A stretch of 63,942 nucleotides of DNA, the filler included, from Reticulomyxa filosa (lineage: Eukaryota; Protista; Foraminifera): the NCBI GenBank assembly GCA_000512085.1. It is 19 parts of 19 records of this genome, joined end to end, with 100 filler letters (N's around TTAATTAATTAA, not from the genome) between each part and the next. Parts side by side here need not be neighbours in the genome. Positions count along the whole stretch, not along the records: positions 10,287 to 12,711 come from ASPP01002366.1; 18 more parts are not named here. One strand, 5' to 3'. A model generated the notes under the pieces. That model was not told where the DNA came from, made no database searches, and saw nothing but the letters and a program-made list of their open reading frames with translations. Within the stretch, counting starts at the first letter, position 1, and the number at the start of each line of letters is the position of its first letter. Positions 1 through 13,379 of the stretch are shown piece by piece. A program made the translations under genes and the position numbers.

Positions 1-33
<33 letters not shown>

Positions 34-94
34 TATACATATGTATATATATAACATAATTGCTCCTCCCCACCCAATAAAAAAAAAATAATTA

Positions 95-1300
95 CTAAAC
101 TTTGAATTGCTCAGTAACAGCAATCAAAACAGTGATCAACGACGGCAGACATGTGTGTGTGCGGTGTATGTCAACCCAAGAGAGATCAGTGTGCCAATTT
201 TGGCCGACGTTTCCCGGAGGAGATTGAAAGAAGCCAATGTTGACCAAGCGGAGTTCTTTTTCGGGAAAAACGGACGTATACAGACGTTTGAGTTGGGTGA
301 TGCATTCGAGGTGGTCCATGATGGACACTAGCATGGGAGCAGTGATGCGTCCAATCTTCAAAGACATGTCCAGCGTGGCATGTTCAATGTCAATTTCCGG
401 ACCATTGCTGCGAAACAGAAACTCTCGAAAGTAATGATTTTGTTTGCGCAATTCGCGCAAGCCTACGTTTTGAAGTGATCTTTGTCGACACCATTTGTCC
501 AAAATGTCAAAGTACGTGTCGTGAACTTTCAACATTGACGACACGTCTGTTTGTGAGACCCCCTTTTGGATCATCCCCACTCCAAAAAATAACAGCGACT
601 TCAAAAAAGAGTCGTCGTCGAGCAATTTCACGCACACGCTGTTCTTGGTCAATACGTCGTCAAACATCTGGACAATGTCTGTGCCCTTTATCTCTTCCAA
701 TCTCTTTTGCAGCTCCTTCGCCACCGTCGTGCTCTCTTTCGCGCATTTGCACGCATCGCTTTCCTTGGGAAGCAGGCTTTCATTTATCAACTTTCGCAAA
801 AAAAAAAAAAAAAAAACAAAACAAAACAAACACATTATTACTGTGCTATTTTTATTTACTTATTTATTTATTTAATCCCAAGTCATGTAACTTCTTCACA
901 AGACATGTTTGGCAGCTTTGCAAATCTCGAATTCCAATTGGGGAGTTTGGGTTCCTCTTTGTTTTCATTGTCACTTGCATTTGTGTTTGTGTTCGTATTT
1001 GTATTTGTATTTGTGTTCATATTTGTACTCATATTTGTATTCATATTTGTATTCATATTTGTATTCATATTTGTATTCATATTTGTATTTATATTTGTAT
1101 TTATATTTGTATTTATATTTATATTTATGTCTACACGCTCATATATACGTTCGTCGTCAATCTCTTCTTCTGTCTCTTCATCTTCTTCCTCCTCCTCTTT
1201 TTCTTTTTCTTTATTCTCTCTCTCCTTGTGTTCATGCTCTTCGTCTTCTTTATTCTCTCTCTCTTCGTATTCATGCTCTTCTTCTTCTTCTTCTTCTTCC

Positions 1301-1340
<40 letters not shown>

Positions 1341-1381
1341 TCTTCTTCTTCTTCTTCTTCTTCCTCCTCCTCTTCTTCTTC
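95..1381 (-). CDS. Partial multi-exon gene: acidic/Asn-Thr low-complexity region followed by a PhyH-like 2OG-Fe(II) dioxygenase domain
   Basis: FFQSPPGNVGQNWHTD..LITVLIAVTE fits the PhyH-type HxD motif and following strand. Intron at ~792-890 (GTTACA...polyT-AAG). Both ends truncated. Confidence 0.6.
979..1127 (-). repeat. Coding 12-bp minisatellite (ATATTTGTATTC)n encoding (NTNM)n/(NTNI)n
   Basis: Tandem unit visible directly; open on the minus strand between a Glu-rich tract and KEEPKLPNW. Confidence 0.9.
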
Positions 1382-1481
1382 NNNNNNNNNNNNNNNNNNN
1401 NNNNNNNNNNNNNNNNNNNNNNNNNTTAATTAATTAANNNNNNNNNNNNNNNNNNNNNNNNNNNNNNNNNNNNNNNNNNNN
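1382..1481. other. Artificial contig spacer N44-TTAATTAATTAA-N44, first of 18. Others: 4850-4949, 6036-6135, 8153-8252, 10187-10286, 12712-12811, 14188-14287, 15619-15718, 20232-20331, 27065-27164, 29556-29655, 31319-31418, 41000-41099, 49033-49132, 50280-50379, 54856-54955, 55956-56055, 58191-58290
   Basis: Identical 100-bp unit with stops in all six frames; genes are cut off at the spacers. Confidence 0.99.
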
Positions 1482-2049
1482 TGTGCATTCTGTAATCAAG
1501 GTAATCATATGTTAATGTATTGAAGTAAAGTTTGTCATTCAATAAAAATTTTTTTATAAAAAAAAAGGAGTTATTATTCACTCCAAAATTGGTATCAGTT
1601 TGCGCATTTGGCAACAATGCTTTATCAGTATTGAACAATCCCAAATTAAGCAATGCTTCTTTCACATGTTTGTTGCCGTTGTCGCTGTCTATATACACGT
1701 ATACACATTTTTTAAAAAATTGATGTAAAAAAAATTCAATTGAAAGATATTTTTTAATTGTGTTGAAGAGGGCAATATTATTTGTACCTGACTTCAATTA
1801 TTCTGAAATAACTTCTGCCCATTCTTATGATACTTTATTGTGCAATAGCGATGATCCAAAAAGTTGCTCATCGCATTAACTCTCTTTAACCTCATAATAA
1901 ATCCCCATATTCAGGAGATGCAGTTGTACTCGCAATCAGAGATACAATCGCACATATTAGAAAGTAGCACATCATAACAAATGATCACATGCTAGCCGCT
2001 TGTGTTTTGTTTTTTGTGTCGTGCATTACTCTAACAAAAATGATGAATG

Positions 2050-2920
2050 TTATATGCCAGCAAAAAAAGCCACGCTGTCAGTTAAATGGGACACAATGTT
2101 GTGAAGCCGAGTAGACTGCGATGATAGCGTATCAACAACAAAAAAGATATATCGGACAGAAGGTGCTAAACGAAACATATCTGGTTCAATGAGAAAAGTT
2201 ACTGGCTCTTCGCCTTGTAATGAATAATTCGAAATGTGACTGATCAAATAGCCATCCAATTTTTGTCGATGGCGAGTAAACTCTTCGTAGGCTTCCGGTA
2301 TGATTCCGTACACCTTCCATCCATTAATTTGGTCCGTTTTTACAGTGTACCTTAAAATCCGAAATGTTCTCTCAAGCTCAAACATCACAAACGCCGTATC
2401 GAAGGCCGCTAGTCAAGAGAAGATGGAGCCACAAATATAAATAAAAGAGTATGCGTGCGGAGAAAAAGAGAAAGAACGAGGGAGAGAGAAGAAAATGATG
2501 GACAAATAAGCAAACAGTTTTTTAAGTCTATCAACTTGATCGTAATAGGGGACGCTGCATCTTCTCTAAAGGCACGCAAATTCTACACTTTGCAAATATG
2601 CTTTTCGTGGGGTAATACGTACTCTTTTTATCCTCAACGGTCTCATAACAAAACGACAAAATTAGCATAAAAATAGCGTCAGGAAGTTCAAGAGGCCTCT
2701 TGCCAGCCGTTGCCTCGTCAATTAGCTCGCAAAATGAAGTATCAGTAGTCAAATTAATTGTCTTTGGAAGCAATGAAATATGCGTTCGCATGCATGGTGG
2801 GAGGTCTGTGTCGTACAGTCCTTGTTTGGAACGAGATGGTTTTGTCATAGTGGTTATTTTCGAGTCTTTTTGCGGAAGATCTATCTTCCAAAAAAATGCA
2901 GCTAAGTTATGAGTTTTCAT
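2050..2920 (-). CDS. Hypothetical protein with an F-box-like motif; two exons, one apparent frameshift near 2568
   Basis: LELPDAIFMLILSFC resembles an F-box. ORFs 2531-2920 and 2050-2388 are separated by a pyrimidine-rich intron-like gap. Confidence 0.45.
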
Positions 2921-6559: not shown

Positions 6560-8152
6560 TTTTTTAGATATGTTGCAGTTGGGCGTGTCAAGCGTCGGAC
6601 TACTATCCAATTACAAATTTGAGAATGTACTTCAATTAAATAATATCACAATTCAATCGATCTAATGATAATAAAATTTCTATAATGTTGGCTCATTGAA
6701 TATCGTAATGGTGATTTATTGGATTGTAACATCATCGCAATTTGCATCGGTAGAACATTTGTGATTGGATGTGAATCTGGTTCAATGGTCTACAATCTAG
6801 CATCAGCTTCATGGATGAATCTATGTGATGATTTAGACAATTTACCAAAAAAAAATTTTTATGCAAAGGACAACATCATATTGACTAGATTGTTTGTCCT
6901 GCTACTCCAAGTCCTGGATTAGGTTTGCAACTTTCATACGTGAATATCAAGATTGTCTTTTCATCTAACATGTTCAATATCTCTTCTTGTGTTGGTTCAA
7001 TCTATTTCTCGGATGGATACTTGATTGAGTGGAACAATTTTGCGATTTGCATTGCAATTTGCTTTGGTATTTCATAACACCAAAAATATTGCACATTGCT
7101 ACTCTTTGGATTCTCTTTAGTCTTCTTGTGCTCCATTCCAGAATGCAAAGGAATATTTTCTTTTAAGATGGGGGCATATCAAGTGTTTGGCTCTATCTTG
7201 CTTCATCATCAACTTGAACTGCTTTTGCACAACTAGGGTCTTTCAAGTTAAAAGAGCACATCATAAAAGATTGAACACAATACTAAAAAAGAAACACAAA
7301 AGACAAAAGAAAGGCACACTAAATCTTATAATGACCAGAAGGTCCATGCAAAATAATTAACAGAAAAAACAATAAGTTATTTCAATTTAAATTGAGATTT
7401 GTCTTGACAATTGTTCAAATACTTACTTGGTATCGATTGCGAACTTGGCTGTTGCTTTCAAAACTTTGATCTTAATATCCGGTTTCCGCGATTGATCCAC
7501 AATGATGAATTGTTTCATTGACAGGGACAATATATTAATATCTGGAAGCAATTCTTGGACATTTGTCAACTAATTGCGACGTAGTTCAATGTACCGCAAA
7601 CATTTAATTAGGAAATGCTGGACAGTATCTTTTCTTCAAACTAAATACAATCAGAGAATCTGATCTTTGGATGTTAAACAAATAATCATTCAATCTAGTA
7701 ACAACGGCAGATGATCTTGCGCTAGCTAAATGTAAATCTTTTCAAATGATTGTTCCATCAATCAGATTAGACAGGAAATATCGTGGTGTGTGTCTTGGAA
7801 TATCAGCTCCTTCGCAAATCAAATGTATGTTCCATTGCTCTGATTAAATCTATGATTATTCAGGAACGTTGATCTATGTTGTTGAACCAAATATGGCTGC
7901 AATTACTGGGCTTTCTTGCGAGCATTATTTCAACAAGATCCACTCACCGTTTCCAGGAATATCACTATTCCACAATTGGATCTGTAATCCTAATGCTTCA
8001 ATATCTGCCCAATGTTTATTGTAATGCAATTGATTGGATATTCCAACTTCATCATAGTGACTAGATTGTCTGTCACGTAATCAAAGAACAGTGAATTAAG
8101 TCGCAATTGGTGGAAAAGATCTACAAAATTGTTAAAATTCACTCACAATCAA
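6560..8152 (-). pseudogene. Degenerate coding sequence with a decayed P-loop-like motif
   Basis: Coding-like composition broken by stops and frameshifts; LIILHGPSGHYK at ~7325-7362 resembles a Walker A. Confidence 0.4.
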
Positions 8153-10186: not shown

Positions 10187-11339
10187 NNNNNNNNNNNNNN
10201 NNNNNNNNNNNNNNNNNNNNNNNNNNNNNNTTAATTAATTAANNNNNNNNNNNNNNNNNNNNNNNNNNNNNNNNNNNNNNNNNNNNGATGATAGGGGTTT
10301 TATCACCACTCCCAGAAATCTGTGGTTGCAGAAATCAAAGTAAATCAATTGTCGAAAAACGACAGCAAACAAAAGCAACACAGCAAAAATCAGGTGTTTT
10401 TTAACGCCGACAATCTTAACTTGTGTTGCTTTTGTGGAACGTAATTCAAAAAACTTGGGACTTTATGTTGCTTGCAGATTATTCTTTTTTCTTTCGGTGC
10501 AGAAGCGAGAAAGTGTTGGTATGCAGAAACAAAAAAAATTACGTTTGTGTGCAATCGCACATACAAATTGGTGTAGGTTCTGATGAAAATAGTTTATCTT
10601 TTTGCATTACGTTTAAAAAAATTCTAGCATCACTACGTGACCCTTTCTTCGTCAAGAAGTATCTTCAGCTCGTTAATTTGTATTTTGAATTTGATAGTTG
10701 TAGTTTCGAACGGACTAAGGTTCAGGAATGAAGGCAAATTTGTGTTACGACGACAACTTAGCAAGGTTTGTCATCCTTGCTGTTTCTTTATTCTGGGACA
10801 TTTGTGGAGTTTTTCAGAAAAAAGGAGACATTTTAATGTGTTGCAAGCCCAGCACCATTATACCCCACACGTTTCCTGCTTGTTACTTCTTCGTGGCGAA
10901 CACCACAAACGATAAGAGTTTTTGAAGATCCTGTTTGTAACATGGGGACGGAAACAATTTGAAATTGGCAAATTGTATCTATGGATAAGAGTTTTAATTG
11001 AAAGAATTTTTTCATGGACTGGTTTGGCGTTAGTTTGATAGACCAAAATGAAATAACTTTTGTTCGTCAATGAATCAGCTGCTTATTGTTTACTGAGATA
11101 GAACCAAGTGTGTGACTGTACTTCTTTTTCTTCTCAAAAGTTTATTTTTCTTGTTCTTTTGAATAAAAGCGCCAAACAAGCAATGCTCCTTTTCCGACAC
11201 AGTAATCTTTTTTTTGCCTTAAAAATAGTAAAGGACGAAAAATGTGTGTAATGGGTGTGCAAATTAATTACAAATACCGAAAAATGAACTTTTAAATTGG
11301 TTTCATTTGAAAGTCAATGTACATCTTATTCCTGACTCT

Positions 11340-11516
11340 TTACATACCTGGTCGAACTCAGAAGGTGATCAAAAATGGCCCCTGGGTAGTGGGAAAATGT
11401 CCCAAAAATGCACTCAATGAGAAATCAGCTTTGGGCGTACCTACTTTGCTTTTTCCCAAGTGGACTAGCATTCGACTCAATTTATGTGTTATGGTGGCTG
11501 CGTAAATCGCACCACT
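11340..11516 (+). ncRNA. U1: U1 spliceosomal snRNA with variant 5' arm ACAUACCUG
   Basis: All U1 elements in order: ACATACCTGG (11342-11351); helix H GTCGAA/TTCGAC; SL1 ACTCAG..GGT-GATCAAAAATG-GCC..CTGGGT; SL2 AGTGGG/CCTACT and CCCAAA/TTTGGG with TGCACTC in the loop; SL3 TGCT..TCC-CAAGT-GGA..AGCA; Sm-like site AATTTATG; SL4 GGTGGCTGCG-TAAAT-CGCACCACT. About 177 nt. Confidence 0.92.
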
Positions 11517-12075
11517 CCCAATATTTTCACTTTATGTTTTGAGTTTGTTTATATGATGTCTTCATTGAGAAGAATCGTCAATGCATTATTACATTCCTTT
11601 GGTAAATATTTTGATAAACGCATAAATCAATAATACTTGAAAACAATCTGATATACAAATTAATTTAGTCAAGATAGGTGGGTGTTTCATTGAGTATTTT
11701 CTTTTTTCTTCCACAATATCGAAATCTTATTTTTTAATTTTTTTTGTATGTCGGTGCTAAGTCTTATTTAACAATCTCAAATTGGTGATGGATGTGAACC
11801 AAGAATTAAACTTAGTACATTTAATAGTTCATTTGCTTCATTCTTTTTCTTATCTCTATTTTGGTGGCTACCACTTTGTGACTTAGTAGAACAGCATTGA
11901 GTTATCAGAGAATTAACGTAATGTTCTTGGTGACTGTCTTTTTTTAAAAAAAGGGGGGAGGAAAATTGTATAAAGACAGCGTTCGTTAGTTTGTGTACTT
12001 TTTTATCGATATTTTTTTTATAATTTGGAGTGACAGCAAAGAGAACAAGCTATTTCAGTGTAACGAAAGAAAACA

Positions 12076-12615
12076 ATGCAAAGAAACGGCAATTCTGAGT
12101 ATAAAAAGGTGCAATCGAGAACAAACGACACAGCAATAATAGCAAAAGAGAATTTGACAGAAGAAGAAGAAAGAAGACAAAGTGTGCATGAGAGTACTAG
12201 TGAAGTGAATGTGGACATCCACACGAGCAACAGAAGCAAGAGTAGATCCTCAAAAAAAAAACGAAGCCATTCGCAAAAAAAAGTGGAGGCTACGTCCTCA
12301 TCGCGTGGGAGCTACAAAACGTCGCTAGCACATTATTTTAGTACCATGGTGGTGACCTTTATTCTGCTCATTTTGGCAGGGACAGCAGTGTTATTTATCT
12401 GGTCCAACCAAAGTGACGGCGCAAAAGTGCGGTTAACTGTGAATCCAATCTTCAGTGCCATCAAGCAACCGAACACGACAAATTGTGTCGACACGACGTC
12501 GACATTTTTGGCTTCACTTTTGGGGCAAGACAGCCACTACAGTAGTTATTTAAAAAAAAAGACATATACACAAGTATACATATATATGTATATATATATA
12601 ATTATCACTTTTTAG
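12076..12615 (+). CDS. Hypothetical single-pass membrane protein, 3'-partial
   Basis: Hydrophilic N-terminus then TM segment MVVTFILLILAGTAVLFIW; ORF runs into an AT-repeat intron. Confidence 0.55.
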   Translation: MQRNGNSEYKKVQSRTNDTAIIAKENLTEEEERRQSVHESTSEVNVDIHTSNRSKSRSSKKKRSHSQKKVEATSSSRGSYKTSLAHYFSTMVVTFILLILAGTAVLFIWSNQSDGAKVRLTVNPIFSAIKQPNTTNCVDTTSTFLASLLGQDSHYSSYLKKKTYTQVYIYMYIYIIITF

Positions 12616-13379
12616 TGATTTTTGTTTTGATCTATCCTTTTGCAAAGCGGAAGGGGAAGGAAGATATTATGTTTGTACGTGTGTCCCACATGCTTTTTTT
12701 TTTTTTTTTTTNNNNNNNNNNNNNNNNNNNNNNNNNNNNNNNNNNNNNNNNNNNNTTAATTAATTAANNNNNNNNNNNNNNNNNNNNNNNNNNNNNNNNN
12801 NNNNNNNNNNNAACAAATTTTTTCTTTACCTCAGGTAATTGCATCGATTTATGTTTGGTAATGATACAATTCTTATTCTCAGATAATTTTGAGCAAAAGA
12901 TAATGCTGTTGCTTTGAAAAAACAAAGCAATTATTTTAATTTTGTTTACAGATTTTTTTGAGGGTACAGAATCGCGGTAGTTGCTACTTTATTTTCTACG
13001 GTCAAGAGAAAGTAACTTTTTTTTTTTTGCGGCGTCAAGGTTTATCAAATTGTACCTTATCTTTTGTTTTTCCGCCAACGAGAAAAAAAAAAATACAAAA
13101 TTATCTGATACTTTGTATACGTGACAAAGCAATAATTTTTTTTTCTTTGGGTGAGATATGTATAATCGACAAGCGCATGTCTGGATTTGAAGCTGAAGCA
13201 GAATAATAATAAAAAGGACATCGTTTGTTGTCACTAATTTGCTGATGCTGAGGTTTTTCATTTTCCGGTATGGCAGCAATTGCTTCTTGTCTCTTGCTGC
13301 TTTTATTGGAAGATACATTCGCTTCTTCTTTTTTTTTTTCCTTTTCATTTCCATTTTTTTTTATCTTTATTTTTATCTG

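Follow-up and report, generated by a model that had tools for sequence, protein, structure and literature searches.

A U1 snRNA gene of the foraminiferan Reticulomyxa filosa with a 5' splice-site arm predicted to prefer GUAUGU donors

The window, a stretch of 63,942 nucleotides from the foraminiferan Reticulomyxa filosa made of 19 parts joined end to end, includes a 2.4-kb piece (10287-12711, from ASPP01002366.1) that is the subject of this analysis. This piece has 35.3% GC and ends in a T18 run; the assembly as a whole has 35.0% GC and an N50 of 3.6 kb (PMC10245619). Rfam cmscan aligns the U1 family (RF00003) to the piece over the entire length of the model (Table 1), with a score below the gathering score of 69.5; rescaled to a 100-Mb genome, the E-value of the match becomes ~1e-3. 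Besides this gene, scans of the piece returned neither a tRNA nor a further credible match to an RNA family, and cmscan returned no second U1.

The predicted RNA has the parts of a complete U1. In the unconstrained minimum free energy fold, helix H and three stem-loops form a four-way junction that is followed by a 3' hairpin (-54 kcal/mol, z -2.78; none of 200 shuffled sequences folds as well), and the same architecture is kept when the 5' arm and the Sm site are forced to be single-stranded. Helix H and stem-loop 4 are free of mismatches. The loop motifs predicted for U1-70K (stem-loop 1) and U1A (stem-loop 2) are both present in the sequence, with small departures from consensus: the stem-loop 1 loop, at 11 nt, is one base longer than GAUCAnGAAG, and the stem-loop 2 motif AAUGCACUC differs from AUUGCAC by a U-to-A change at the second base. 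Some of these sequences are found in other U1 genes retrieved from metagenome contigs (described below), the Sm sequence AAUUUAUG in a 72.6-bit U1 (locus L002) and GAUCAAAAAGG in the 78-80-bit U1 genes of loci L010 and L022. Thus the full U1 of the original prediction, with helix H, four stem-loops, GAUCA and UGCAC loops and an Sm site, is recovered by cmscan and by the folds; every structural feature of U1 that we examined is there, and the RF00003 score lies below the gathering threshold.

Table 1. Coordinates of the U1 gene in the window and of the U1 genes on metagenome contig L017 (positions along the window or along the contig, respectively).
Feature	Position	Strand	Basis
U1 snRNA gene, whole Rfam match	11340..11518	+	RF00003, 40.4 bits, E 3.5e-8, model 1-166 of 166
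5' splice-site recognition arm ACAUACCUG, A11344 for the usual U at position 5	11342..11350	+	sequence; cmscan alignment against AUACUUACCUGG; duplex energies
Helix H, 5' strand GUCGA, pairs with 11472-11476	11351..11355	+	5 Watson-Crick pairs, constrained fold; covaries over 28 U1 sequences
Stem-loop 1, U1-70K-type loop GAUCAAAAAUG at 11367-11377	11356..11387	+	both folds; G28, A29, C31, A32, A36 invariant in alignment A1
Stem-loop 2, ~15 nt longer than consensus, U1A-type UGCACUC at 11409-11415	11388..11445	+	both folds; 15-nt insertion in cmscan; UGCAC invariant in alignment A1
Stem-loop 3	11447..11470	+	both folds
Helix H, 3' strand UCGAC	11472..11476	+	constrained fold
Sm site AAUUUAUGU	11479..11487	+	aligned to consensus AAUUUgUGg; fits RAUUUNUGR
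Stem-loop 4, GGUGG-CUGCG / CGCA-CCACU	11493..11516	+	9 bp in both folds; aligned to stem-loop 4 consensus
L017 U1, arm ACGCAC, 3' end cut	1-105	-	metagenome scan
L017 U1, arm ACGUAC	241-386	-	CCCATAA-type box by eye
L017 U1, arm ACUCAC	551-684	-	metagenome scan
L017 U1, arm ACUUAC	1311-1457	-	metagenome scan
L017 U1, arm ACAUAC	1908-2060	-	metagenome scan
L017, sixth U1 copy, 5' end cut	2187-2326	-	metagenome scan

Comparison with other U1 genes indicates how far this RNA has diverged, and where. In an alignment of 28 U1 sequences, 24 columns are invariant (the arm minus position 5, G28, A29, C31, A32 and A36 of the stem-loop 1 loop, UGCAC and the AUUU of the Sm site) and the window U1 keeps all 24; compensatory changes are seen in 28 of the 31 consensus pairs. 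For the window U1, just 17 of the 31 consensus pairs fall in the right place in the MAFFT alignment. Given that the RNA's own fold is complete, we attribute this to a slipped register, the branch being long; this figure was therefore weighed on neither side. The window U1 is ~50% identical to every metagenome U1 and sits on a long branch (0.86) whose position the tree does not place; none of the metagenome genes is its close relative. Since its divergence preserves the helices and it shows neither truncation nor an A-tail, we infer an intact gene rather than a decayed copy: on sequence and folding grounds, 11340-11518 is a real U1 snRNA gene whose structure is intact and whose lineage evolves fast.

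What sets this gene apart is one base of its 5' arm. In every U1 snRNP, base pairs with the donor site are made by nucleotides 3-11 of the RNA, which face the last three exon positions (-3 to -1) and the first six of the intron (+1 to +6). The 5' end of the window U1 (11340-11350) reads ACATACCTG where the consensus is ACUUACCUG, and cmscan aligns it as UUACAUACCUGG against the consensus of the family; eight of the nine arm positions agree with ACUUACCUG, the varying one being position 5, and in the U1 alignment A1 the arm residues A3, C4, A7, C8, C9, U10, G11 and G12 are invariant. The A that had been noted at 11344 is thus indeed in the sequence, giving ACAUAC where ACUUAC is usual, and it lies at U1 position 5, facing intron position +4. 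According to nearest-neighbour energies, the window arm forms a duplex of -12.0 kcal/mol with CAG/GUAUGU (the slash marks the exon-intron boundary) and of -7.6 kcal/mol with CAG/GUAAGU; the corresponding values for the canonical arm are -8.0 and -11.8 kcal/mol. The preference is thus swapped by ~4.4 kcal/mol between the arms, making the window arm a mirror image of canonical U1. The perfect duplex with CAG/GUAUGU that had been proposed for the A-bearing arm agrees with this calculation, in which A5 restores Watson-Crick pairing with a U at +4. The preference for GUAUGU is a computed one, and the arm would presumably also exercise it in vivo.

The arm has a second potential partner within the RNA. 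In the unconstrained fold, UACAUA of the arm (11341-11346) pairs with UAUGUG (11482-11487), which belongs to the Sm site of this very gene. The re-coded arm could thus bind a UAUGU in the Sm region that resembles a donor, which may be a coincidence.

The surroundings of the gene hold few recognizable features. Upstream, we found no recognizable snRNA promoter element, and none can be named because there is no same-lineage comparator. Further upstream, a hairpin (10369-10435) has a 15-bp perfect stem (ACAAAAGCAACACA.../...TGTGTTGCTTTTGT; -26.5 kcal/mol, z -3.9); a mir-15 match over 10360-10444 in the Rfam cmscan (22 bits, E 0.03) was rejected as chance. The U1 gene is followed 560 bp downstream, on its own strand, by a 179-aa open reading frame (12076-12615), whose N-terminus is charged and rich in serine and lysine and leads into a single hydrophobic helix; searches with it returned no exact record, no homologue at E <= 0.01 and only sub-threshold Pfam matches. 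The tail of this frame enters AT-rich repeats, and an intron therefore probably starts before 12575.

Arms of this kind are carried by U1 genes elsewhere. A single scan of metagenome contigs with a pattern made of the ACAUAC arm and the two loop motifs returned 26 loci, 20 of which hold ACAUAC-arm U1 genes: at the pattern site, 14 loci have a U1 at or above the Rfam gathering score, another three reach 56-66 bits, and three further, very divergent loci (22-24 bits) are U1-like by eye. The other six (L013, L015, L018, L021, L023 and L025) were rejected as U1 because they resemble chance hits in coding sequence. All nine contigs that hold at least two complete U1 genes (L001, L011, L003, L007, L010, L016, L017, L019 and L022) bear mixed arms; they belong to plants and marine algae-like organisms unrelated to the window organism. 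In the tree, ACAUAC copies cluster with the ACAUAC copies of other contigs, apart from their canonical neighbours, which implies that they are old, maintained paralogues. The snRNA promoter of the lineage is present on all arm types. In the plant-type clade it consists of the USE GTCCCACATC (-73 to -75) and a TATA box (~-30), separated by 32-34 nt, which is Pol II spacing (for the definition of the plant USE, see PMC9845283); in the marine clade it is a CCCATAA box, present in 13 of 15 genes at -55 to -58. Promoter-bearing U1 paralogues that differ only in arm position 5, or in positions 5 and 6, are common in environmental eukaryotes, beside canonical copies.

Several of these contigs deserve a description of their own. 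The richest is a marine one (L017:1-2326, contig Ga0209404_10051779, minus strand), which packs at least five U1 genes, with five arms among them, into 2.3 kb (Table 1) and additionally has a U4; three of its U1 genes were checked and have a CCCATAA-type box near -55, reading CCTATAA in one. This set looks like a U1 isoform repertoire for donor classes that differ at +3/+4. Two marine snRNA/tRNA clusters (L016:224-1410 and L019:418-1425) have three U1 genes each, with ACUUAC, ACAUAC and ACGUAC arms on each contig. In the tree, each gene pairs with its same-arm counterpart on the other contig (support 99/96, 96/96 and 92/90), so all three arms were already present before the two organisms diverged. 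Two marine tandem clusters (L010:758-1192 and L022:1493-3875) combine ACAUAC and ACUUAC U1 genes with U4, U5, U2, 5S rRNA and many tRNA genes, and CCCATAAC is found at -56 in all of their U1 copies. The plant-type U1 genes (L001:8812-8971 and 10191-10348; L003:6944-7100 and 7593-7753; L006:1691-1850; L012:561-717; L007:2-164 and 956-1121) have the USE at ~-74 and TATA at ~-30, again with Pol II spacing; their ACAUAC copies lie 0.5-1.4 kb from canonical ACUUAC copies and form a separate clade; this suggests that some green-lineage genomes have conserved a U1 paralogue that reads +4U. An ACAUAC-arm U1 of 152 bits (L009:3717-3882) shares a freshwater contig with a U2, a histone 3' stem-loop and another U1 copy truncated by the contig edge. 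The very divergent U1-like genes with an ACAUAC arm (L005:639-802; L008:1200-1357, minus strand; L014:1558-1703, minus strand) have a GAUCA loop, UUGCAC and a AAAUUUUUUG Sm site, and adjoin SRP RNA or U4 matches; L005 and L014 score 22-24 bits, L008 reads as L005 at the U1 site, and Rfam thresholds would miss all three.

By analogy, this outside evidence leans towards mixed U1 sets for the window genome too. Our favoured reading, a tentative one that we consider quite possible but short of probable, is that the window U1 is a working +4U-reading isoform that exists in the same genome beside at least one U1 with another arm. We favour it because all multi-U1 contigs are mixed, because Physarum polycephalum has both types, reportedly as standard and modified candidates (bioRxiv 10.1101/2022.06.08.495308), and because GTAAGT is also among the candidate donors of the original prediction. 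The separate ACAUAC clades and the promoters found on each arm type of the metagenome genes point the same way. Under this favoured reading, the window copy would be expressed and would share the work with another isoform: its A5, facing intron position +4, would make nine unbroken pairs with CAG/GUAUGU at the price of ~4.4 kcal/mol on CAG/GUAAGU; a second U1 gene elsewhere in the genome would carry another arm, probably ACUUAC; and both isoforms together could cover GUAUGU-type and GUAAGU-type donors. Several points weigh against it: the 2.4-kb piece has no second U1, the score of 40.4 bits lies below gathering, the upstream region offers no recognized snRNA promoter (a same-lineage comparator being lacking), the mixed-arm contigs are from plants and marine algae-like organisms whose U1 genes are so distant from this one, and Entamoeba provides the example of a genome with a single, fully re-coded U1 (bioRxiv 10.1101/2022.06.08.495308).

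That example brings up the alternative that the window U1 is the sole or overwhelmingly dominant type, with an arm that evolved in step with a donor consensus of +4U, a history reported for the abundant Physarum U1 and, with other bases, for Entamoeba and Mastigamoeba. Co-evolution and a set of several U1 variants had both been offered in the original prediction, and both are reasonable. We see the sole, co-evolved U1 as possible, if rather less so than the mixed set: the candidate donors placed by the original prediction in other pieces of the window mostly have a U at +4, the Physarum U1 genes covered by RNA-seq carry ACAUAC, Entamoeba manages with one re-coded U1, and the window gene appears intact from its folds; yet the same candidate donors also include GTAAGT, each multi-U1 contig recovered is mixed, and Physarum itself reportedly holds both types. 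It is unlikely that the gene is instead a silent or decaying copy (a pseudogene or an unexpressed variant) in a genome whose working U1 is canonical. An Rfam score far under gathering, the 15-nt insertion in stem-loop 2, the extra base in the stem-loop 1 loop and the want of an identified promoter element upstream would fit such a copy, and many human variant U1 genes are reported to be weakly functional or degraded (PMC10870369, PMC13573567). However, a decaying copy would hardly retain all positions that are invariant over 28 U1 sequences, keep helix H and stem-loop 4 free of mismatches, fold into a four-way junction better than 200 of 200 shuffles and confine its divergence to changes that preserve rather than break helices, and this one has no poly(A) tail or retrocopy-type truncation. 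Finally, an error of base calling or assembly at 11344 in an otherwise canonical U1 is very improbable: the assembly is fragmented and homopolymer-rich, and the piece ends in T18, but 11344 lies outside any homopolymer, and many independent U1 genes, as well as those of Physarum, naturally have A at this position.

The wider interest lies in a standing question of spliceosome evolution, namely why only a few lineages with GUAUGU donors have re-coded their U1 when the majority retain one that mismatches (Roy & Bowser, bioRxiv 10.1101/2022.06.08.495308). With a re-coded arm in a rhizarian, the change could no longer be seen as one lineage's quirk; if the ACAUAC U1 is the principal donor reader here, co-evolved with a +4U consensus, it would be the first such case outside Amoebozoa, and the Physarum solution would have arisen independently. 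The mixed-arm repertoires may turn out to be a more general result than the window U1 itself. Since promoter-bearing arm variants are common beside canonical copies, they suggest that many organisms read donor classes via a small repertoire of U1 isoforms, an idea testable with existing genomes and small-RNA data.

The U1 snRNA of Physarum polycephalum was reportedly described in 1989 by Myslinski, Wilhelm and Branlant (NAR 17:1019). The arm found here was put forward as an undescribed system, which it is not: an ACAUAC U1 together with GUAUGU donors is already on record for Physarum, where a closer look finds standard and modified U1 candidates both present (Roy & Bowser, bioRxiv 10.1101/2022.06.08.495308), and where two U1 loci with the arm ATACATACCTGG have an average RNA-seq coverage of 77 and 69 (PMC4758236 supplementary file 8). 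Judged by title, that preprint is the only item of the literature returned that concerns such an arm, and the search found no open paper on a foraminiferal U1; the ACAUAC arm is thus published, but not for a foraminiferal lineage. The Physarum and window U1s share an identical arm (AUACAUACCUGG/ACAUAC, complementary to GUAUGU) and the same overall U1 architecture, and the stem-loop 2 loop of Physarum likewise departs from AUUGCAC, reading CUGCACU. In contrast, the bodies of stem-loops 1, 2, 3 and 4 differ strongly by eye, which sets the window organism apart from Physarum, the first two bases are AU in Physarum and UU in the window U1, and the Physarum RNA is expressed according to RNA-seq whereas the window U1 is known as a gene sequence.

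Other U1s resemble the window U1 in part. Relative to the canonical RF00003 RNA, it has the same helix H, stem-loops 1-4, GAUCA...AAG and UGCAC loops, Sm site and ACNUACCUGG arm, and differs by the U5-to-A change, the stem-loop 2 that is ~15 nt longer, the 11-nt stem-loop 1 loop and the score under gathering. Human variant U1 snRNAs are similarly altered-arm paralogues that exist beside canonical U1 (PMC3561869, PMC10870369); in humans, however, they are minor, developmentally regulated and in many cases poorly functional, and no link to a +4 donor class is known. Entamoeba (U1 arm ACAAAC matching GUUUGU donors; one fully re-coded U1 per genome, with very few introns) and Mastigamoeba balamuthi (ACGUAC, with GUGCGC donors) also have arms re-coded at the positions facing +3/+4 so as to match an atypical donor (bioRxiv 10.1101/2022.06.08.495308), but the bases changed and the donors are others, and both are Amoebozoa; the published re-coded arms are few, and all amoebozoan. 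The commoner solution is that of the yeasts: as had been pointed out for GUAUGU-donor yeasts, 69-70 species of Saccharomycotina keep ACUUAC, and so do Giardia and Trichomonas, which also have GUAUGU donors (Roy & Bowser, bioRxiv 10.1101/2022.06.08.495308). These organisms have the donor type of the candidate donors of the window genome and tolerate the +4 mismatch, whereas the window U1 carries the compensating base.
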